Positions 5,640-43,350 of a stretch of DNA of 64,000 bases are shown piece after piece. Source of the stretch: Hypanus sabinus (lineage: Eukaryota); contig NC_082712.1 of NCBI RefSeq assembly GCF_030144855.1, forward strand, positions 29,636,001 through 29,700,000, in the 5' to 3' direction. The notes below the pieces were generated by a model. That model was not told where the DNA came from, did no database searches, and saw only the letters and a list, made by a program, of their open reading frames with translations. Position 1 is the stretch's first letter, and every line of letters begins with the position of its first letter. Position numbers and translations under genes: made by a program.

Positions 5640-6085
5640 GTCAGCATGGAGCACTATGGCAGAAAGCAGCATCCATCATCAAAGACCCCCGCCATCCACG
5701 ACATGCTCTCTTCTCGCTGCTGCTGTCACGAAGGAGGTACAGGAGCCACAGGACCCACACCACTAGGTTCAGGAACAGTTATTAGCCCTCAACCATCAGG
5801 CTCCTGAACCAGAACGGATAACTTCACCCGCCCCATCACTGAACTGTTCACACGAACTGTGGTCTCACTTTCAATGACTCGTCATCTCATGTTCTCAACA
5901 TTTATTTATTATTTTTTCTCTTTGGTCTTTGCACATTGTTTGTTTGTCCGTCCTGTGCGGTGCGGGCTTTCATTGTTTATATTGTGTTTCTTGGATTTAC
6001 TGTGTATGTCTGCAAGAAAACGAATCTCAGGGTTGTAAATGGTGACATTTATGTATTTTACTAACACATTTAATTTGAACTTTGA
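5640..6085 (+). mobile_element. Rex1/Babar-like LINE 3' end
   Basis: aaagcagcatccatcatcaaagacccc...aggttcaggaacagtta...aatctcagggttgta...tttgaactttga; the same end occurs at 42.4-42.9 kb and about 38.0 kb. Confidence 0.65.
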
Positions 6086-7009
6086 TTAAGTCCCTACAGA
6101 TTTCAGCGAGAAAAGCGTTACTAATGTTCATTACAAGAGAAAACAGCAAAGTTGTCACTTAAGGTAATGGGCCAGGATACGGTAATCTTTGGTTCTGGGG
6201 AAAAAGCTAAAACCCTTCCACTTTTATCACCAGTCCCGAGGAAGGGTGGCTGACCCCAAACCTAAACCGCTTTCTCTTTCTAAAGGTGCTGATTGACTGG
6301 CTGAGCTTTTCCAGCTTTTCTTGATTTTGTTTCAAAATTTCCGATAGGTGCTGTTCCCAGATCGTTAAAGGAACACCCCTCCCCCAAGGTTCTATACACT
6401 GATAAGTTTTGAAAAGTTACAAAAGTAAATAGCTGGTTACTTTGCGCGATTGCTTCTGTGGTAGGATCCTGTTCATGTAAGAGGTCCACATCGTGCGCTG
6501 TTGTGAGGTTTGCATCCGATCACTGTCTTTCTCGTACACCATTACGTGTTGCTTTTCTCGCTTGGTGCTTTCAACACAGACTCGAGTCGAGTTCTTGGAA
6601 ACAAAGAAAACAAAATCTGGTTAAAGAGGACCTTGCCTCTGTCGGTGCTCAAATCAAATCAGTTTCAGAAATAATCTGGCGGATTTGCGAGGGGAGTCCA
6701 GTAAAAAGCAGGACAGGCAGTTGCTGCGATGTGGTTGCACCTTTTCCAGGAATGCTGGTCCATCGCACCGACTTTAAGCGGCTTAGTATTCCAAATAAAG
6801 AAGGCGAGTCTCTATTGCAGAAAAAGCCAACACAAACATCTCTGCGTGTCACCGGCCCAATCCTTACAATAAACTTAACTACAACACCAAACAGTAACAC
6901 CACTCCCATAGCAACCAACAACTTCCTCACTCTTCACAGCCCTTTCCCCAACTCTCTGTCGTCATTTTTTAATTTTAGAAGCAGAGATTCCTTTACGTTT
7001 TTAGTATGT

Positions 7010-30796: not shown

Positions 30797-31302
30797 AAAA
30801 CCCTGAATATTTCCAAAAACCTGAATGTTTCTGGGTTATTTCCCTTATGGAATTTATGGATATCAAAGATGGGATGGACAATCCATAACATGATGCTGTC
30901 TTCATTAAAACAGGGAAACAGCATGATTGCAGATAGCTCAATATTGTTACCATGTGTTTAAAAAAATGCTGAGTCAGGGCATAATAATTAAAAACCACTT
31001 TTACCAAGATATTATTCAATAGAAATATTTGTCCTAGAATTATCTGTTACTGTGTGGTCAAGTCAGCAGCTTTTTTAAAAAATAATCTTTGTAAATAGAT
31101 TGATTGAGATGACAAGTTTAGTGCATAATAGCATCTTTGCAATATGCAGCTAGTTTGCAAGAGTTAAAAGAACGACAATTTTATACCAAAGGTGCTGTTA
31201 TTTTACCAAACAGACGTTCCACAGAAACACAGGAAATGAATGTGCTCCAGCAAATGAAATCTGACACTAAGATCACGCCAATCCACAATCCACAAACTTG
31301 GG

Positions 31303-31335
31303 TTACTCATCATCCTTGCAGCCAGTTTTGCTCAA
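31303..31335 (-). CDS. RWDD4: RWD domain-containing protein 4, last coding exon (LSKTGCKDDE*)
   Basis: Acceptor ...ggtttgcag; matches the known RWDD4 C-terminus LSKTGSKDDE; stop TAA. Confidence 0.95.
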   Translation of the reverse strand: MSKTGCKDDE

Positions 31336-32466
31336 CTGCAAACCAATGAAATGAGAAAAGATTAAAGGAAACTCAAGTACAAATCAGAAAGGTTTGAGAA
31401 CAATTCTAAATTTAATGCACTGTTCTGTGTAACTATGCAAACCTCCAGATTTGATAATTGTATTTTTTTCAGAATTTTTGCAGAAAGAAACTGCCCCAAC
31501 CCTGAAAATTTTCAATACTTTTGCAGAGCACTTTTTCGCATTTCCCCAAGTTAAATGACTGTATCAGTCTTAACAAGGAAGTACAGCAATAAGAGATGAA
31601 AATTGGGATAAAGGCCACACAAGAGGCTAACAGAAGGGGAAAATGGAAAGTGCAGAGTGAACAATCAGAGCTAAACACATGGTGTGCTGGGGGTACTCAT
31701 CAGGTCAGGCAGCATCTATGGGTGTAATAAACAGTCAACATTTTGGGTCCAGACTCTTCAGGACTGGAAAGAAAGGGAAAAGAAGTCAGAATACGAAAGT
31801 GGGGGAGGGGACAAAGTAGTACAAGGTGGCAGGAGATGCATGAAACTGGGAAAGGGGGAGGGATGAACAAAAGAGCTGGGAAGTTGATCGGTAGAAGAGA
31901 TAAAAGGCTGGAGAAGACGGAATCTGATAGGAGAGGACAGAAGACCTTGAAAGAAAGGAAATGGGGAGGAGCACCAGAGGGAGGTAACGGTAGGTTACTT
32001 CACCCCACTCTGGTTTCACCCATCACCTGCCACCTTGAACTTCTTCCTCCCTCCCCCGCAACCACCTTCTTACTCTTACCCTTATCTAGATGTTGTGGGC
32101 CTGGAAGCTACTGTCAGATCAGCCTTGATAAGGAATTTTTTTAAAAAAAAGTTGGTACACTTACAACCACAGTATAAAAAGAGGCAGGCAGAATGGATGT
32201 TTGTGGTGCTAATTAAGTAGACTGCCTAGTCATACATGAAGTTAGGCTTTGTATATTTGGAGAAGCATTTATCAACTGACTTCTGATTTATTATTGGTAA
32301 AGTGTAGAGCGGCTTTTAGGTGTTAGGAAGCAATACTTTAGGATACCAATCCCTTGAACTGCTTTTATAACTGCAATATTTATGAGGTTAGCCCAGTTGA
32401 GCCTAACAGCCTGCACAGGATAAATTACTTCTGGTGCATCATATTTTAAAACAAATAAAGACTTAC

Positions 32467-32469
32467 ATG
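32467..32469 (-). CDS. RWDD4: RWDD4 3-nt microexon (CAT, His)
   Basis: Minus strand cacatag|CAT|gtaagt. It supplies the His of the ...DV(V/I)KHLSKTG motif, which neither flanking exon encodes. Confidence 0.85.
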
Positions 32470-32726
32470 CTATGTGCCCAGGAACAAAGTCATCCATCAG
32501 ACATCACAGATATTTGAAAGAAAACAGAAAAATATATCAGTAATTGAAATGCTTATAATTGATAAACAATTCTAAAGTTTGGCAGTTGCAATAAATTTCA
32601 TTTATTTTTGATCATATCTAACAATTTTTTGTGCAATGAAATGTGTTGATTGCTTCCTGCTCATCCTATAATCAGATGTGTAGTCACTATAATGTTGAAA
32701 CTCTTAACAAAAAGTCAATGCTATAC

Positions 32727-32776
32727 CTTAATGACATCCACCCAATTCCATCCTCGTGGCAGTTCCCCTCGGTTAT
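32727..32776 (-). CDS. RWDD4: RWDD4 coding exon 6 ((D)NRGELPRGWNWVDVIK)
   Basis: 50 nt, AG/GT boundaries, phase consistent with its neighbours; conserved RGWNWVDV motif. Confidence 0.96.
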
Positions 32777-34047
32777 CTGATGGAAAGATCATAGACAGTA
32801 CTTAAAATTACTCTCGTGGCAAGATTCAAGCCGCTGCATTTCTTTCATTAACATTCCTTCCACTCTGGAAACTTTCATAACTCTGCCCATTCAGTCAGCT
32901 CTACCATCCCCATATGTGGCTAATACTTAAAGTGAATTTAGTGAGCTACACAACTTTGAGAACATTAAATCTAACTTCAATTCAAACAATTCTACAGTAG
33001 CCTCCATCTACCTTGTCAATTGGGATCTGCAATGAGCTTGGCCCATACTGCCTTTGTGAACCAAAGATTTAACTGTGGACCTTTAATAATGACAAAGAAA
33101 ATTAAAATAGATGGATTATAATAAGGAAAATTAAAACCAATCAGTTAAAAGGGACAATACTTTTATAGTGACAGAATTGGATAGGGAGAGAAAAATAAAG
33201 TTGCACCTCTTGACTTTCCTTGGGCTTCAGGAAGGAAAACAGTGTGATTTATCAAAATGCAGATCTGTGATAATGTTCTGATAAATGCATTACCACATTT
33301 GGGATACAAGGGAAAACTGCAAAATGTGCAAATATGGCAAAGAAATGTCAAGGCACTATACGCAATCTGATAGAACAGGTGATTTCATGGCAGCTAAAAT
33401 GCAGTGTGGAAATGTGGCAGGTGTTCCTCAAGCAGAGTAATATGTATAGTTCCAAGCACAGTACTTGGGTAAAATTGCAGAATAAAGTTCCAAATACAAA
33501 GGATTCTAGATCCGTAGCTATACAGAGAAAATGAGGTTATTCCCCTAAGGATTCATTTCCCAAGTTTGGATAAAGCTCTTTAAAATTGAGAAGGGCTTTG
33601 AAGGGGTAAATAAATGTTTCCAATGGTTGAATGATCACTGTCCAGACGAGTTAAGCTGGTATGAGATCAGAAAATAACATGTGAACAAATTCAATATAGA
33701 ATGGAACAGGCTAATGTTAATTCAGAGCTCTTTTTAGTAACAGATTCACACAGGCAGAAGACTCAAAGAAAATGTATACTTGAAGTTCCTATTAGCAGAT
33801 ATAGAATGAAGGGAAACAACTTCAGTAATGCAGCTGGCACCACAGAACCTAAGTAGATGTGTGGTAGAGAAAAATTTGTATTTGATTGGTGGAGCTGTTT
33901 TACAATCACTTTGCAGTAAAATAAAACTAGAATGTTATTTAAAACATCATCTTCCTAACTCCCAATTGCATTGCAGAAGAATTGAGTGATATATCACAAC
34001 TGCAAGCACACAATATTTAGTAAACATATCATTGCAGAATTCCAAAC

Positions 34048-34159
34048 CTGTTTTATCAGCCAACTTTTTCTTTTGGGACTTTGACAATTGATCTTTTTTC
34101 TCTTTTTTCTTAGCCACAGGAATACTTGTAGTTACAGAATTTTCATCCGTTGACGTGGT
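34048..34159 (-). CDS. RWDD4: RWDD4 coding exon 5 (TTSTDENSV...KKKEKKDQLSKSQKKKLADKT)
   Basis: 112 nt, AG/GT boundaries; basic segment matches RWDD4. Confidence 0.95.
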
Positions 34160-34259
34160 CTACAGAGAAATTAAATTTTATATTAATACCAAATCATTAA
34201 ACTAATCCTTTTCATCCTCTCCATAACAAATGACTACTAAAATCAAGGTGCTATCTCCT

Positions 34260-35625
34260 GTCCAGAGCAACACACAAAATGTTGGAGGAAGAGAGCATAG
34301 GGAGCACCTATGGAGAGAAATAGACAGTTGAGCTCTTTCATTGGGACTGGAAAGAGGGGAGATAGGCAGTATAAAAAGGTGGGCAAATGTATGGGGGTGG
34401 GGAGGGTGGATCCAGCAAGAAGGGAATGATAGGCAAATGAAGAAGGGGGAGAATGGGAATGACGGAAGCAGGATTGAAGATGGAACCTGATGAAAGGACA
34501 GTGAACCATGGAATAGGGAAGAGGTGAAAAATAAATCAGAAAGGAGGACCGTGTGGTGAAGGGTAGATTGAGAGGGATACAGGAGGGAAAGAAGGGATGG
34601 GGCCAGTGGGAAAAGGGTCAAAAATGGATAAAGGTTTGGATTAAGGGTTAAAAGTGGACAGAAGTAAGTAGTTACTATAAATAAGAAAAACTTGTTTCAT
34701 GTTGTCAGATTGGAGATTACCATGGCAGAATATGAGCTCCTGTTCCTTTAATCTGCATCTAACCTCAATTTGGCAGATGCAGCTATGGACAGACATGTTG
34801 CTAAGATTGGAAAATGGAGTTAAAATGGTTGGCCACTGGGAGATCCTAGCTGACATGGCAGACAGAGCAAAGCTGCTCAATGAAACTACACCTCAATCCA
34901 CATCAAGTCTTAACCATGTTACATCAGATACAACAAATTACATCGATGGACTCATATGTGAAGTGCTGCCTCACTGGGAACGGCTTTTGGGGGCCTTAAC
35001 TGGCAGTGAAGGACAAACTGTAATAGGGAAAGGTGTAACTCATAACACCATTGCAGGGATAAGTGCCTGGAGGGGAATCAGTGGGGAGTGATTAATAGAC
35101 AAGGGGGACAAAGAGATTGACCTGTGGAAAGAGAGGGGAGGGGAGGGGAATATGTGTCTCATGGAGGGAATGCCTTTGGAGATGGTGGATGAGATTATGG
35201 ATGTGCAAGTTTGTGGAGTGGTAGGCTGCTCTGGATATTTTCATCTCTAACAGTTGATGGGACATTAACAACCTTGACTTCACTACTCCCCTCACATATT
35301 CCAGCCTCAGCCCCTCTGAACACACTGTAATCCTCAACTCCTTGTCATTATCCCATGGTCCAGTTTACCACTTCCATCTGTTAACTCACAGATTCATACA
35401 TCATTCCTACTCTCCCCCCCCCCCCACTTGCCTGTCATTCCATTTTCATCTTGAATTACCTAACACTTGCCAGCTCTTGCTTCACCTTTCCCCCTCCCCA
35501 TTCTCCAACCACACACACACACTCACTTCTTGACCCAATATGTTAATTGTGTATTTCCCTTCATTGACGCTGGCTGACCTGCTAAGTTCTGCCAGCATTT
35601 GGTGTGTTGTGACATCTGCAGTCTC
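34260..35625 (-). mobile_element. Penelope-like retroelement remnant with inverted terminal repeats
   Basis: GIY-YIG endonuclease C-terminal remnant (RCRLKEQELIFCHGNLQSDNM, 34641-34880) between inverted copies of the caacacacaaaatg(c/t)tgg block. Confidence 0.7.
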
Positions 35626-35914
35626 TCTTCTATCTCACATACAGAAATGTGTGACTGAACATCAAGCATTTGCTTGATTCTACACATTTTTCCAAAAATA
35701 AACTGGTGAGGGGTCTGTTTCTGCTTAATACATGCATAATGCATTTATTACACAACCAATAGCCTTAATAAATTTAATCTTTTGGTGTGTATCAACTGGC
35801 TGTTGTCTTCTACGTTCAACAATTGTGTTTAATTGTAATATACAAGGAACTCTGATGGCTGTGAAATCCACTTTAAAAAAGCAAGTTTGTTTTCCTGCAT
35901 TTAAACAACTTAAA

Positions 35915-36090
35915 TGTTACACACACAACATGCTGGAGGAACTCAGCAGGTTGGGCAGCACCCACGGTAATGAACAGTCAATGTTTCGGGCCAAGACCCT
36001 TCGTCAGGACTGAAGAAGGAGGGGGCAGGGTCCCTATAAGGAAGGTGTGAGGAGGGTGGGAAGAAGGCTGGTAGGTGCCAGGTACGTGAG
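35915..36090 (-). mobile_element. Penelope-derived repeat with the best-preserved hammerhead motif (35975-36012)
   Basis: Minus strand CAGTC-CTGACGA-A-GGGTC-TT-GGCCC-GAAAC-ATT-GACTG. Confidence 0.75.
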
Positions 36091-36576
36091 GAAGAAGCGG
36101 TTGGAGGCGTGTCTGGTGGACAATGAAGTGTAGGAGAGGTCCATGGCAGACGGTGGAGAGTGAGGCCCAGAGTGGTGGCAGAGAGAGTGAGTGCGCCAGG
36201 AACACACAGGAGTGAGAGACTGGCATCACAACAGCAAGACCAAGGAACCGACTGTGGACTTCAAGGAAGGGAGGTCAGGAGACCACAGGAGTCTCATCAG
36301 TGACAGGTGAGCCACGGAAAGGGACAGCAGCTGCAAGTTCTTGGGCATAAACATCTCAGAGAATCTATTCTGGGTCCAACAGATTGATGAAGATAGCATC
36401 CTAACAGCTCTATACAGGACTTTGAGGAGATTTGTTATATCACCAAAGACATCTGCAAATGTCATAGGTGTATGGTGGACAGCATTCTGACAACCTGCAA
36501 CGCAACACCACTAACATCATTCCCATAATCTTGATTGATAAGTTACAGAACCTGGGACTCTGTATCTTCCTCTGCA

Positions 36577-37322
36577 CACTTTGGAAGGACAAACTCCAAG
36601 GCAGAGTACAAAGTAAATGGCAGGATACTTGGTAGGGTGGAGGAGCAAAGGAATCTGGGGGTACATGTCCACAGATCACTGAAAGTTGCCTCACAGGTAG
36701 ACAGGGTAGTTAAGAAAGCTTATGGGGTGTCAGCTTTCATAAGTCGAGGGATAGAGTTTAAGAGTCGCGAGGTAATGATGCAGCTCTATAAAATTCTGGT
36801 TAGGCCACACTTGGAGTACTGTGTCTAGTTCTGGTCACCTCACTATAGGAAGGATGTGGAAGCATTGAAAAGGGTACAAAGGAGATTTACCAGGATGCTG
36901 CCTGGTTTAGAGAGTACGCATTATGATCAGAGATTATGGGAGCTAGGACTCTTTGAAGAGAAGGAGGATGAGGAGACATGATAGAGGTATACCAGATATT
37001 AAGAGGAATAAATAGAATGGACAGCTAGCGTCTCTTCCCCAGGGCACCACTGCTCAATACAAGAGGACATGGCTTTAAGGTAAGGGGTGGGAAGTTCAGG
37101 GGGGATATTAGAGGAAGGTTTTTTCACTCAAGAGAGTGGTTGGTGTGTGGAAAGCACTGCCCGAGTCTGTGGTGGAGGCAGATACACTAGTTAAGAGACT
37201 ACTAGACAGGTATATGGAAGAATTTAAGGTAGGGGGATATATGGGAGGCAGGGTTTAAGCGTTGGCACTACATTGTGGGCTAAAGGGCTTGTACAGTTCT
37301 GTACTATTCTACGTTCTATGTT
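36577..37322 (+). mobile_element. CR1 LINE 3' fragment
   Basis: HFGRTNSK..LGVHVHRSLKVASQV..LVRPHLEYCV; (ttcta(c/t)g)n tail. Confidence 0.9.
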
Positions 37323-38312
37323 CATGCAACTGGATCCTCAACTTCCTAACCAGAAGACCACAATCTGTGAGGATTGGTGATAATATCTCTTCCTCGCCTA
37401 CCATCAACACTGGTGCACCTCAGGGGTGTGTGCTTAACCCACTGCTTTACTCTCTCTATACCCACGACTGTATGGCTAGGCATAGCTCAAATACTATCTA
37501 TAAATTTGCTGAAGGTACGACCATTGTTGGTAGAATCTTAGATGGAGACGAGAGGGTGTACAGGAGCAAAATATGCCAAGTAGTGGAGTGGCATCGCAGC
37601 AACAACCTTGTACTCAACGTCAGTAAGATAAAAGAGCTGATTGTGTCTTCAGTAAGGATAAGACGAAAGAACACATACCAATCCTCACAGAAGGATCAGA
37701 AGTGGAGAGAGTGAGCAATTTCAGGTTCCTGGATGTCAAGATCTCTGAGGACCTAACCTGGTCCCAACATTTCAATAAAGGCGGCAAGACAGTGAATATG
37801 CTTCATTAGGAGTTTGAAGATATTTGCTATGTCAACAAAAACACTCAGAACTTCTATAGATGTACCATGGAGAGCATTTTAACAGGCTGCATCACTGTCT
37901 GGTATGGGCCTACAAAGTACCCAGGACATCTTCAAGGAGCGGTGTCTCAGAAAGGCACCATTATTAAGGATCCCCAGCACCCAGGGCATGCCCTTTTCTC
38001 ACTGTTACCACCAGGTAGGAGATATAGAAGCCTGAAAGTGCACACTCAGTGATTCAGGAACAGCTTCTTCACTCTGCCATCTGATTCCTAAATGGATGTT
38101 GAATCCGTGAACATTACCTCACTTTTTTAATTACATATTATTTTTGTTTTTGCATGATTTTAATCTATTCAATATATATACACTGTAATTGATTTACTCA
38201 TTTATTAATTTATTTTTTTCCTCTTCTTCTATATCATGTATTGCAATGAACTGCTGCTGCTAAGTTATCAAATTCAACAACACACGCCGGTGCTAATAAA
38301 CCTGATTCTGAT
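37323..38312 (+). mobile_element. Rex1/Babar-like LINE RT and 3' end
   Basis: [37 protein letters not shown]; ends aataaacctgattctgattctg. Confidence 0.9.
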
Positions 38313-38724
38313 TCTGCACTCTGGCATGGAAGTTTCAATGCACAGGATCACAAAAGAAGCTGCAAAGGGTTGTAGACTTAACCAGCTCCAACTTGGGCAC
38401 AACACTCCCCATCATTCAGAGCACCTTAAAGAGGCAGTGCCTCAAGGAGACTGCATCCATCACTGAGACCTTCAACAAATTTCACATCACGCAAGTCAGT
38501 GAAAATAAATCTGACTGACTCTGCACACAATTTAAATCCTAACAGCACAGTATTTCACAAACCACCTTACATTTCAGTGTTGTTTGTCCTATGAACAGAA
38601 ATATAAAGTGCATAAATGCAACTATAATATCACAGTCCAAGTCCATGACATAACATTTCAGCAGGACCAGATCACTCAGGAACCATGCCCATTAAAAGAA
38701 ATACCATATATTGCAGGGTTTTTA

Positions 38725-38973
<249 letters not shown>

Positions 38974-39518
38974 TTAATTAACAAAGTAATTCGATAAGTT
39001 CTGCCATATCTTTATAAAAGCTTCCAACCATTGCAAGTGACACCAAAATCATTAAGTTTAACATTCAGAGACAGGGCACAAAGTCTTACTAAACTTGAGT
39101 CAAGTACAGGATAGAAAACAGTTGACGATCATAACTGAACTGGCAAGTGCTCATCTACACCACTGCATACATGGGTGAAATTTTGGGAAATATGTTTTGT
39201 CTACTTTAAAGTTTGTACAAAGATGGATATAAATCACATTGCTGAGCAGTTACATAGTACATCAGTAACAACGCCATAATATCCATCAACAAGTGTGGCC
39301 TTATTGCAACATATGGAGCAGAAAATGAAGATCTCTTATCAAAATAGTAATTGTTATGTCTATACTTTCTAAAAAAATAAATAATTCTTAAATTGAGCAC
39401 AATTCAGTTCAAAAATTACCACCAGTTTTTAATTCGCTAAGGACATTTCAGATCCTTTAGAAACTGAAGTGAGATCAAGTTATTCCGAATTCTGTACTGT
39501 ACCAGTTTTGAACTCTTA

Positions 39519-39629
<111 letters not shown>

Positions 39630-40749
39630 CTAAAATGCAACAAAACAAAATAGAAATAAAAGTTAGATTTGATACTGGTAGTTAAGTGAAAATATGATGA
39701 AACAGTATTTTTTTGTCAACAATTATTGATACATGGGATATTCTCAAGGACTTTTAACATCCAGCTCCAGTTATTTATTGCATAATGGTCACCATTTGTT
39801 ACACTACCCCACAACTTTTCCTGTCAAGAAAAACAATTAAAGATAAAGTTGGAAGATAGGAGAGAGAAGTACTGGAATTTCAATTTTGTCACCAGGCAAT
39901 TATCCAGTGCAGGAAATCACATTCATGCTGTAGAACCTATTTTTTCCACAAGTAGTAAAAATAAAATAATTATCTCCACAATGGGCAAGTTATGTTTTTG
40001 TGACAATGCTCAAACCTCAGCAATTGGAAACAATTACAGTCAATTATCATGAGAATACTTTTATACAAATTCGTGGTTTTGAAATAAAAAAGCATTTCTA
40101 AAGAAAACACTTGAAACACCCAGGAGATCAGGCAGCACCAGTGGAAAGAGAAACACAATACTGAAGATTCCCATAAAGGGTCTTGGCCCAAAACAGCGAC
40201 TGTTTATTCCCGTCCATGGGTGCTGCCTGACCTTCTGAGTTCCTCCAGCACATTATGTGTGTTATTGAAGATCCAAGACCCCTCTTCAGAACCGAGAAAG
40301 AACGTTATCTTTCAGTAGCAGAGAAAATGAGAAGGGCTGGCAGGACATAATAAATAAACACTTAGTACAAGACCAAATGTATTAATCTGGCTGTTAAAAT
40401 CAGATTATGCTTCTTTGTTATACTTTGCTTTAGTTATACTTCAAAATTATTCTGATGAATTGCTACAGGAAGCTTTTGTTTTTGGTACAAAATAGATGTT
40501 TTGAGAAAAATCTCAAAAATCTTGTGTGCTTAGTTTAATTCTTTTTCCAACTATACCCATACTTCATGATCACTTTTATATATATAATTACACCCATACT
40601 TCACAATCACTCCAATATGATTTTATTTGATTCATGTCACTATTGAATTAATGGATGCTACAAGTCAGCTACGAGAATGAATCTTCCACTAATGTTCCAG
40701 TATACAAGTAGAATCTGAAAATACAACACAATGAAGTAAAGAATAATCA

Positions 40750-40923
<174 letters not shown>

Positions 40924-41779
40924 TCATTACAATATGACACACACCCTCTAACTGTAAAATATTTACATCCATATACAGTAATCATAACCCCAAATTAGAT
41001 TATCTGAATGAAGTTTGATAGCATTTAATGAGCACAAGAAGCAAATTCATAAATCTAATAAACATTGTTTTTCTTTCCTCAGATGTAGCTTCAGTTAAGT
41101 TTTGACAGTATATCCTTCAGATTTTAAGCAAGTTTCTATAATTGTCCATAAACAATGTACCACAATATGTGATTTTACTCTTTCAGAATCATACAGGGAC
41201 AAGCTGAAAATTAAGCAAATCTACAGTAACAATTTTCATATGATCCTCTGACTTTTTGGACATAACGTTCAACAGGTGAATAAGATGGTTATGTTGTCTC
41301 CACTCATTTAGCGAATCATTGGTCTTGCAAAGGTGGAAGTGAGGCACCTTTTCTGAATCATAGGTGTACATGTGAGAAAAGGTTTTTGACCTAGTTACAA
41401 GGCCAACGATCATCACCAATTCTGAGCAAAATTCTTCACTTGTTCAGTTTATGAAATCATATTGTAGTGAAGTCGTGCAAAGAAGCACAAGGGGAAACAA
41501 CAGTACGAGGGGGGGAAATGCAGCATGCGAACTCCAACTTTGTTTTGCCCTACTTTAAGATGCAACACTAATGTATTGAGGATGTTAGAAATCCGGGAAC
41601 AGAGCAGCAAATGGTGGAATCACTCGGTATCTGCAGAGTGGGAAAAGGAATTACACTTCCAAATCGATGAAGGGGTTATTGATTTGTAACGCTAACTCTG
41701 CTCCACTCTCCACAGAGGCTGTCAGGAGCTTTTTCAGGTCTTATTTCCAGCAATGGGATGCATCAGAAAAGTTCCTGTA

Positions 41780-42410
41780 TTCGCATTGCGGGCATTTTGA
41801 CGTTAGCCATTGACTGAGACCATGCGGAGCCCCTGGGACCGCCAAGAGAAGCAGCAGGCAGGCAGGCAGAGTCGCCAATCCCCCGGCACTGGGGAGAGAC
41901 CCCGTCGGCTGACCGGCTCGAGCACGCATTGCGGCTCCGATGCGCGGCGGCTCTCACCGTCTGGTCTTCGTTGGTTGCCATCGCAATTACCGGGCGGTGT
42001 CAGAGCCGAGTCACCTCCATCCACCCACCCCGGTAGGGGGGGGAGGGCTCGGTTCAGCAACGCGTCCACCGGAGGAAACGGGCACTTCTTTCCGCCCGGC
42101 CTGACTGCTCGCCCCCTGTTTACCCTTTGACCCCTTCGCGCCGCACTCCATTGGTCGCGGCGGCGGCATATTCGGCCAATCAATCGCTTACTTTGTACGG
42201 GCGCCTGCGGGCGTCACGTGGTCGGACTCCCATCCTCCCCTGACGTGGCGGAGTGGGGGGGATCCCTTCCCTTGGTTTCGTGACGGGTGCCCAACGTGAT
42301 TATAGTCTCAGGTATTCACTGACAACTCCCCGATCTACGAGCAGGTCTCCTAGTCCGTCGACTCTGTCTGGGCAGACGCATCCTACAGTCCGGCTGCACG
42401 TTCCCGTTCT
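41780..42410 (-). promoter_or_regulatory. CpG island / promoter of RWDD4
   Basis: High GC and CpG; CCAAT boxes at 42150-42154 and 42176-42180; GTCACGTG at 42213-42220; TGACGTGG at 42241-42248. Confidence 0.85.
41958..41981 (-). CDS. RWDD4: RWDD4 coding exon 1 (MATNEDQT)
   Basis: ATG inside a CpG island, donor gtgaga; matches the MSANEDQE start. The eight exons sum to 564 nt = 187 aa plus stop. Confidence 0.95.
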
Positions 42411-42411
42411 A

Positions 42412-43350
42412 ATTCAACGTTTAAAGTAAATGTATTACCAAAGTACATATATATATTTCCCCGTATATAACCCTGAGATTCATTCTCTTGAGGGCAATCA
42501 CTGAAAAAAACAAATACAATAAGATCAATCAAAGACCAACAGGATGGGCAACTAATGTGCATAAAAACAATAAACTGTGCAAATACAGAAACAAAAAAAT
42601 GCATACTTGCATGCATATATAAATAAACAATAATTATCAAGAACATGAGATAAAGAGTTCTTGAAGGTGAACCCATGGGTTGCTGGAAAAGTTCAGTGAT
42701 GAGGTGAGTAAAGTCATCCCTTCTGGTTCAAGAGCCTGATGGGGGGTAATAACTGTTCCTGAAGCTGGTGGTACAGCTCCTGAGGCTTCTGTACCTTCTT
42801 CTTGATGGCAGCAACGAGAAGAGAGCATGTTGTGGATGGTGAGGGTCACTGACGACGATGGATGCTGCTTTCCTAAGATAGTACTCCGTGATAACATAAG
42901 AGCATAAGAAATAGGAGCAGGAGCAGCCCATCCATCCGTCGAGCCTGCTTTGCCATTCAATGAGACCATGGCTGATCTGACCGTGGACTTATATCCACCT
43001 ACCTGCCTTTTCCCCATAACTATATAAAAATGCAACTAGTCAATATACTCTCCACCACACATTTATTTTGTCAAAAAGTTTTAGATGACATGCTGAATCT
43101 TCGCACACTTCTAAAAAGCAGTGGTGCTACCGTGCTTTTTTTGTAATGGCACTTACGTGCTGGGCCCCAGACAGATTCTCTGAAGTGATAACATTGAGGA
43201 ATTTAAAGTTGCTGACCCTCTCCACTTCTGATCCCCCAATGAGGATTGGCTCCTGGACATCTGGTTTCCTTCTGCTGAACTCAATAATCATCTCATTGGT
43301 CTTGCTGACATTGAGTGAGAGGTGGTTGCTGTGGCACCGCTCAGCGCTAT
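42412..43350 (-). mobile_element. Rex1/Babar-like LINE 3' part, split by a short CR1 tail (about 42892-43025)
   Basis: LSLNVSKTNEMIIEF, VERVSNFKFL, LRKAASIV..DPHHP..LFSLLPSRRRYRS; the inserted piece has an (acataag)n tail. Confidence 0.85.

Follow-up and report, generated by a model that had tools for sequence, protein, structure and literature searches.

The gene RWDD4 lies on the minus strand of the window, that is, the whole 64,000-nt stretch of DNA of the stingray Hypanus sabinus that was analysed, which contains no N bases. Exon-by-exon rebuilding gave eight exons with a coding region at 31303..41981, and all of the gene's features described below are on the minus strand. Exon 1 (41981-41958, encoding MATNEDQT), exon 2 (40908-40828), exon 3 (39629-39520), exon 4 (38887-38737), exon 5 (34159-34048) and exon 6 (32776-32727) are followed, after a gap of 1391 nt, by the coding part of the last exon (31303..31335), which encodes LSKTGCKDDE and the stop codon. 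Exon 6 is 50 nt long and ends in ..NRGELPRGWNWVDVIK, its last codons being TGG GTG GAT GTC ATT AAG (WVDVIK), and its donor, AAG|gtatag, is weak; the last exon has the acceptor tttgcag| and begins with TTG AGC AAA. In the gap there is one tag|CAT|gtaagt only, spanning 32471-32461 (...cctgggcacatag|CAT|gtaagtc), in which a canonical AG acceptor and a GT donor enclose exactly three in-frame nucleotides, the structure of an ultra-short internal coding exon. This micro-exon, exon 7 (CAT, 32467..32469), encodes a single histidine, is in phase 0 on both sides and has as its junction flanks the exon 6 end ...GTCATTAAG and the last-exon start TTGAGCAAA..., and its donor GTAAGT (32461..32466) is complementary to the 5' end of U1 snRNA at all of the positions +1 to +6. 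The initial annotation had put the CAT codon, the GTAAGT donor, the WVDVIK end of exon 6 and the LSKTGCKDDE start of the last exon at these places, and all of them are correct in the sequence.

The micro-exon divides the gap into an intron of 257 nt (32470..32726), which starts with GTA TAG and would be read as valine and stop if retained, and an intron of 1131 nt (31336..32466). In the latter, a C/T-rich stretch with ctcccc and ttcc runs is present at 31780-32060 and a G-rich stretch at 32000-32090, 5' of the former in the transcript, and the pair looks like an inserted repeat. A scan of 31000-43000 at the Rfam gathering thresholds gave no match. The spliced product including CAT is 187 aa long and ends in ...WVDVIKHLSKTGCKDDE, and the product without CAT has one histidine fewer and keeps the reading frame, so that skipping is frame-neutral, as had been claimed. 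In 5000 first-order Markov simulations, AG-CAY-GTRAG was expected 0.003 times in the 1391-nt intron, and it is seen once. In addition, among the six AG-NNN-GT sites of this intron the CAT site is the sole one with a consensus donor and the sole one with a His codon.

RWDD4 is a broadly expressed gene of the housekeeping type. Residues 1-176 of the rebuilt protein are identical to the RefSeq RWDD4 product of Hypanus sabinus, and identity to other elasmobranch RWDD4 proteins is 79-97%. The protein has the characters of an RWDD4 orthologue, namely, an N-terminal RWD domain (called from precomputed PF05773 assignments on elasmobranch RWDD4 relatives), a K-rich linker and the C-terminal W-V-D-V-x-K-H-L-S-K-T-G. 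For the white-shark orthologue, which is 85% identical, the AF2 model has a confident RWD fold at 1-111 and then a disordered linker, and places the histidine within a short helix (171-180) with a pLDDT of only 56-63, so the effect of losing one residue is not predictable from it. A review of GCN1 lists RWDD4 among the RWD proteins and gives its tail no function (PMC10931611). The tail is, in sequence, very widely shared: K-H-L-S-K/Q-T-G after W-V-D-V/I-V/I is found in sea anemones, corals, annelids, molluscs, a brachiopod, insects, shrimp, echinoderms, amphioxus and all the vertebrate classes sampled, including mammals, in whose sampled models K-H-LSK is present in agreement with the VKHLSKTG reading that the initial annotation gave for them. 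The histidine and the following leucine are invariant in an alignment of 40 sequences from cnidarians to vertebrates, which was built from His-containing sequences, and the histidine is conserved also in species in which its codon is not a separate exon.

Orthologous loci in five other genomes (two sharks, a skate, a teleost and a starfish) were found through annotated proteins, and in each the sequence from the last base of exon 6 to the first of the last exon was delimited and searched for AG-CAY-GT; for tetrapods the evidence consists of protein isoform patterns alone. The micro-exon context reads acag|CAT|gtaagt in the whale shark (Rhincodon), 264 nt after exon 6, in the zebra shark (Stegostoma), 246 nt after exon 6, and in the milkfish (Chanos), 620 nt after exon 6, tcag|CAT|gtgagt in the skate Rhinoraja, 1619 nt after exon 6, and tcag|CAT|gtaagt in the starfish Asterias rubens, 1031 nt after exon 6 and 240 nt before the last exon. 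Thus, the donor is GTAAGT in four of the other species and GTGAGT in the skate. Each orthologous intron read contains exactly one AG-CAY-GTRAG, with an expectation of 0.002-0.045 per intron, and the lengths of the flanking introns vary outside the sharks and rays. Absence of the AG-CAT-GT context from related species had been regarded in advance as evidence against the exon, and the context is present in both sharks and the skate. Moreover, the proposed conservation across jawed vertebrates, which holds for the sharks, the skate and the milkfish, was if anything too modest, as the starfish has the exon too. Compared with the two sharks, the stingray shows an identity of 0.83-0.93 in exon 6, 0.17-0.47 in mid-intron and 0.67-0.80 at 32507-32463, intronic conservation being highest just upstream of the micro-exon, over about 45 nt ending there; with the skate included, about 110 nt around the CAT motif are conserved. 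RefSeq RWDD4 models of other species (Rhincodon typus X1/X2, Amblyraja radiata X1, zebrafish NP_001005985.2 and Asterias rubens) imply the orthologous 3-nt exon, and the stingray exon is like these in the gene, the CAT codon, the phase-0 introns and the ag|CAT|gtRagt context; unlike these models, the Hypanus sabinus product is without the micro-exon and the last coding exon.

The intron upstream of the micro-exon has several features of its own. The 80 nt immediately 5' of the acceptor AG (32471-32470) are free of AG (32472..32551), the next AG upstream being at 32553-32552 as the initial annotation had it, and in all six species read this zone is 71-115 nt long. AG-to-AG gaps of at least 80 nt make up 1.1% of such gaps in the RWDD4 gene, but the 80-nt zone alone is unexceptional, because the zones at the other acceptors of the gene are 12, 22, 34, 40, 43 and 111 nt. 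Within the zone lies a distal branch-point-like heptamer, TACTGAT (32536..32542), whose A is 68 nt before the micro-exon, and directly downstream of it a T/C-rich tract (32516..32533); both had been described earlier, and the T-rich run comes after the heptamer. The counterpart TACTAAT is found at -67 to -72 in Rhincodon, Stegostoma and Rhinoraja, and the pyrimidine fraction in the bin -60..-51 is 0.8-0.9 in all four cartilaginous fishes. Nearer the exon is CTGA-TGGATGACTTTG (32485..32500), in which a proximal branch-point-like CTGAT with its A at -28 is followed by the block TGGATGACTT. This block (32485-32496, 14-25 nt 5' of the micro-exon) is invariant in the stingray, the skate and the two sharks, is absent from the milkfish and starfish introns, and could contain a proximal branch point (GAUGAC) or be a splicing enhancer. 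The prominent elements in the aligned cartilaginous fishes, including the skate, are TACTRAT, the pyrimidine stretch TTTCTCTCAAAT and TGGATGACTT, and around the last of these the order is the proximal candidate CTGAT/CTTAT at -28 to -35, then invariant TGGATGAC, then a short pyrimidine run at -20..-11. The presence of TACTAAT in both sharks and the skate favours the distal TACTGAT as candidate branch point; the distal and proximal candidates appear equally conserved, so that conservation cannot choose between them.

Exon 6, on the other hand, has a donor without the G at +5 in the four other vertebrates (gtatac, gtatat, gtacgg and gtaaaa), while that of the starfish, unlike the vertebrate ones, is strong (gtgagt). 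Two further candidates were considered and rejected. The first, an RNA structure connecting the conserved block upstream with the splice sites, was discarded, since RNAalifold on the four cartilaginous fishes gave -1.5 kcal/mol without informative covariation and the stingray sequence folded no better than its shuffles (z = 0.18). The second was a trace of duplication: exon 6 ends in TGGATGTCATT, which has a hexamer in common with the conserved intronic TGGATGACTTT, but this resemblance was too weak.

The behaviour of database models at this junction was tallied in 345 RWDD4 models containing the motif. The commonest reading is the canonical K-H-LSK (212 of 345), present in mammals, birds, amphibians, teleosts, sharks, echinoderms, insects, molluscs and cnidarians. 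The other 133 models (39%) are aberrant at exactly the K/His/LSK junction: in 62 the translation continues through the GT after K, giving K-V... or a stop, 25 read K-LSK without the histidine, 19 read K-H-V-S..., that is, CAT GTA AGT translated on, 12 read K-Q-LSK with glutamine in place of histidine, nine join the histidine to a different downstream exon, an alternative 3' exon (coelacanth, owl, zebrafish NP_001005985.2), and six give other readings. These errors are themselves informative. The K-V or stop readings indicate an intron directly after K, and the K-H-V-S readings place a donor immediately behind CAT in birds (Anomalospiza, Patagioenas), many teleosts, sturgeons and the zebra shark. 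In the coelacanth, K-V read-through occurs together with histidine joined to three different continuations, so that its histidine is on a separate exon. Mammalian proteins show no more than K|V read-through and isoforms containing the histidine. The K-Q-LSK models are mostly Ensembl-derived or non-RefSeq (including P0119, P0139, P0156, P0163, P0165 and P0174); the acceptor of the last exon is usually CAG (31336-31338 in the stingray, tttgCAG|TTG), so the glutamine is probably this acceptor's own CAG, counted as coding to make good the missing residue.

The rays are among the species affected. The RefSeq product of Hypanus sabinus is 177 aa long, that is, exons 1-6 followed by K-V-stop in intron 6 (32726-32721); the model passes over the one-codon exon, and the product is thereby 11 conserved C-terminal residues short. 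The Mobula product and isoform X2 of Hemitrygon are likewise 177 aa long and end in K-V, and the Pristis product is without the histidine; the micro-exon is therefore absent from all four ray products and the last coding exon from three. The protein searches yielded no stingray transcript whose C-terminus is complete. The expectation that annotation would easily miss such an exon is thus borne out, both by the 133 models that go wrong at the junction and by a Hypanus sabinus product that stops in intron 6. Common aligners are less sensitive for exons shorter than 8-10 nt (PMC7821500).

Taken together, CAT at 32469-32467 is very probably a genuine 3-nt coding exon of RWDD4, most likely included in nearly all transcripts and supplying the invariant histidine of W-V-D-V-I/V-K-H-L-S-K-T-G; for Hypanus sabinus itself, inclusion is what the genomic sequence predicts. 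Transcript-like material of other species agrees with this reading. The histidine is present in all 61 Logan/JGI cluster representatives counted as transcript assemblies, the contigs being taken as transcripts since they are mostly about 1-2 kb long and encode the whole protein, and in the 16 Logan members that the skate and goby clusters list, one of which was seen on 37 contigs. Clustering at 90% identity may hide His-less transcripts, which would be 99% identical, behind His-containing representatives, so the statement that all transcripts carry the histidine is weaker than its wording. If the exon were instead a regulated cassette, substantially skipped in some tissues to give a K-LSK isoform with an altered C-terminal register, the survival of the reading frame on skipping, the 25 His-less models and the isoform pairs of NCBI would all be accounted for; RefSeq pairs with and without the histidine exist in a skate (Amblyraja), two sharks (Scyliorhinus canicula and Chiloscyllium plagiosum), the carp (Cyprinus) and a caecilian (Rhinatrema), and indicate that some real skipping is possible. 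However, the His-less models all come from genome annotation (NCBI, and UniProt/UniRef in one case), all 61 representatives and all 16 listed members of the two clusters have the histidine, and His-less junctions are an expected artefact because of the loss of aligner sensitivity below 8-10 nt (PMC7821500). Moreover, the skate annotated without the histidine has a perfect cag|CAT|gtgagt in the intron, and the histidine is kept where its codon is not a separate exon. Substantial regulated skipping is therefore considered improbable.

Far less probable still is that tag|CAT|gtaagt arose by chance or is a relict and that stingray RWDD4 ends in K-V-stop at 177 aa or joins K to LSK, although this is what the products of the rays say if taken at face value, those of Hypanus, Mobula and Hemitrygon X2 in the truncated form and that of Pristis without the histidine. 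Against it, the last coding exon has remained intact, its acceptor being good and its frame open to the conserved stop, and the motif, expected 0.003 times by chance, is conserved with its surroundings of about 110 nt in the skate and the two sharks. Furthermore, truncation after K is found also in many unrelated species that have His-containing isoforms too, and the V-stop is not conserved, the whale shark reading gtatac at this place.

An included exon of one codon raises the question of its recognition. A 3-nt exon cannot carry the acceptor-side and the donor-side complexes together as in usual exon definition, and the RWDD4 micro-exon leaves no room to be defined in that way by U2AF/U2 on its acceptor side together with U1 on its donor side. 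What recurs in all six species is a donor of near-perfect U1 match on the micro-exon and a long AG-free zone, and a poor donor on exon 6 recurs in the five vertebrates only. The favoured model of splicing is that the near-perfect micro-exon donor, bound by U1, would be committed first to the acceptor of the last exon, and that the weak exon 6 donor would then be left with the AG of the micro-exon alone, so that inclusion could occur without exon definition. The AG-free zone of 71-115 nt may let a branch point and pyrimidine tract sit about 50-70 nt upstream, and a branch point so distant would keep U2 and U2AF clear of U1, the acceptor AG being the first one downstream of it. The conserved intronic sequence on both sides may be a third feature that eases recognition.

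Known systems offer partial parallels. The constitutive mini-exons of troponin (6-7 nt), on which Sterner and Berget worked in 1993, are reportedly recognised jointly with an adjacent exon from which a short intron separates them. The likeness is that the exon is too small for exon definition and that sharks and the stingray have a short upstream intron (246-264 nt), across which an exon-intron-exon unit might be recognised; the difference is that in the milkfish, the skate and the starfish this intron is 620, 1619 and 1031 nt, respectively, and a short upstream intron was accordingly rejected as a general explanation. Recursive splice sites (ratchet points) have the form AG|GTAAGT and leave no nucleotide in the mRNA. 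The RWDD4 micro-exon resembles them in that an acceptor is almost immediately followed by a strong donor inside one long intron, and by analogy the two intron halves are likely to be removed stepwise. However, the AG does not abut the GT as in a zero-length exon: three nucleotides lie between them and are kept in the coding sequence of the orthologues. The neural and retinal micro-exons dependent on SRRM3/SRRM4 (bioRxiv 10.1101/2021.09.08.459463) share with the RWDD4 exon its very short length, preservation of the frame and a conserved flanking intron. They differ from it in that the stingray has no UGC enhancer close upstream and that the histidine is present in all transcript assemblies seen. 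The lack of UGC near the acceptor, which the initial annotation had pointed out, extends to the whole 80-nt AG-free zone, where there is no TGC; this is a weak test of membership in that class, as in the other five species a TGC occurs at 35 nt or less from the acceptor, which is near chance.

Exons of 3 nt have been described in TLN1 (PMC4317164), RPS24 (PMC12207440), cytohesin-1 (PMC6314551), MAP4K5 (PMC8632122) and the Drosophila gene homothorax, hth (PMC7392893), and one in NCAM1 is mentioned in a preprint (bioRxiv 10.64898/2026.05.13.725022). The RWDD4 exon shares with all of these a single codon, canonical AG and GT, preservation of the frame, difficulty of mapping and frequent mis-annotation. 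While most of them are alternative cassettes regulated by tissue or state, the exon of RWDD4 looks constitutive and, unlike them, encodes a residue that is invariant even where there is no separate exon for it.

The origin of the exon can be approached from species in which one or both of the introns are missing. In amphioxus (Branchiostoma belcheri, locus 5709-6277) the sequence reads GTC AAA CAT|gtaagt ... acag|CTC AGC, so that the histidine ends the upstream exon and, of the two introns, only the one after the histidine exists. In shrimp, Lingula and the sea anemone Actinia, K-H-L-S lies within one exon and there is neither intron. In addition, a search seeded with the starfish protein gave 80 proteins, mostly invertebrate, among which the His-less or K-V ones are all ambulacrarian, namely, those of two hemichordates, a crinoid, a brittle star and a sea cucumber (P0241, P0242, P0243, P0255 and P0256). 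Their restriction to this group is the signature of an intron after K there and of none in the protostomes and cnidarians, and it suggests the same missed micro-exon across Ambulacraria. Since amphioxus has the intron after CAT, shrimp, Lingula and the anemone have neither and the starfish has the exon, the micro-exon is probably older than the vertebrates, and the intron after the histidine is at least as old as the deuterostomes. We infer that the ancestral exon ended in ...AAR CAT|gt, as in amphioxus, and that a second intron, inserted between K and H, isolated the codon. This K/H intron was either gained once before the split of echinoderms and vertebrates, with loss in amphioxus, or gained twice independently at the same spot. 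That the constitutive 3-nt exon was a single invention, made in the common ancestor of echinoderms, hemichordates and vertebrates more than half a billion years ago and held since then by a strong donor and a long AG-free zone, has in our judgement an even chance of being true.

No paper discussing the RWDD4 micro-exon was found, nor one combining RWDD4 and microexon, and the supplements of the MicroExonator paper and of Li et al. (2015) do not contain RWDD4; a long-read preprint on SF3B1 lists the gene solely because of an alternative 3' splice site nearby. At the level of annotation the micro-exon is already known, as it is implicit in the RefSeq models of many species, including the curated zebrafish record, and 3-nt exons are an established class, in which the case of RWDD4 changes nothing in kind. 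Its significance is of another sort. The coordinates given here correct the gene model of stingray RWDD4, and the gene serves as a measure of the damage that a 3-nt exon does to automated annotation, in the form of donor read-through, loss of the histidine and substitution by glutamine. If the single ancient origin is true, the exon would rank with the oldest ultra-short exons known and would serve as a clean natural model for the processing of a one-codon exon by the spliceosome. Moreover, RWDD4 provides a comparative series from no intron (cnidarian, brachiopod and shrimp) through one (amphioxus) to two around one codon (starfish and vertebrates), in which the two-intron species all have a long AG-free zone and a consensus donor, and this series may help studies of micro-exon recognition and of intron gain.
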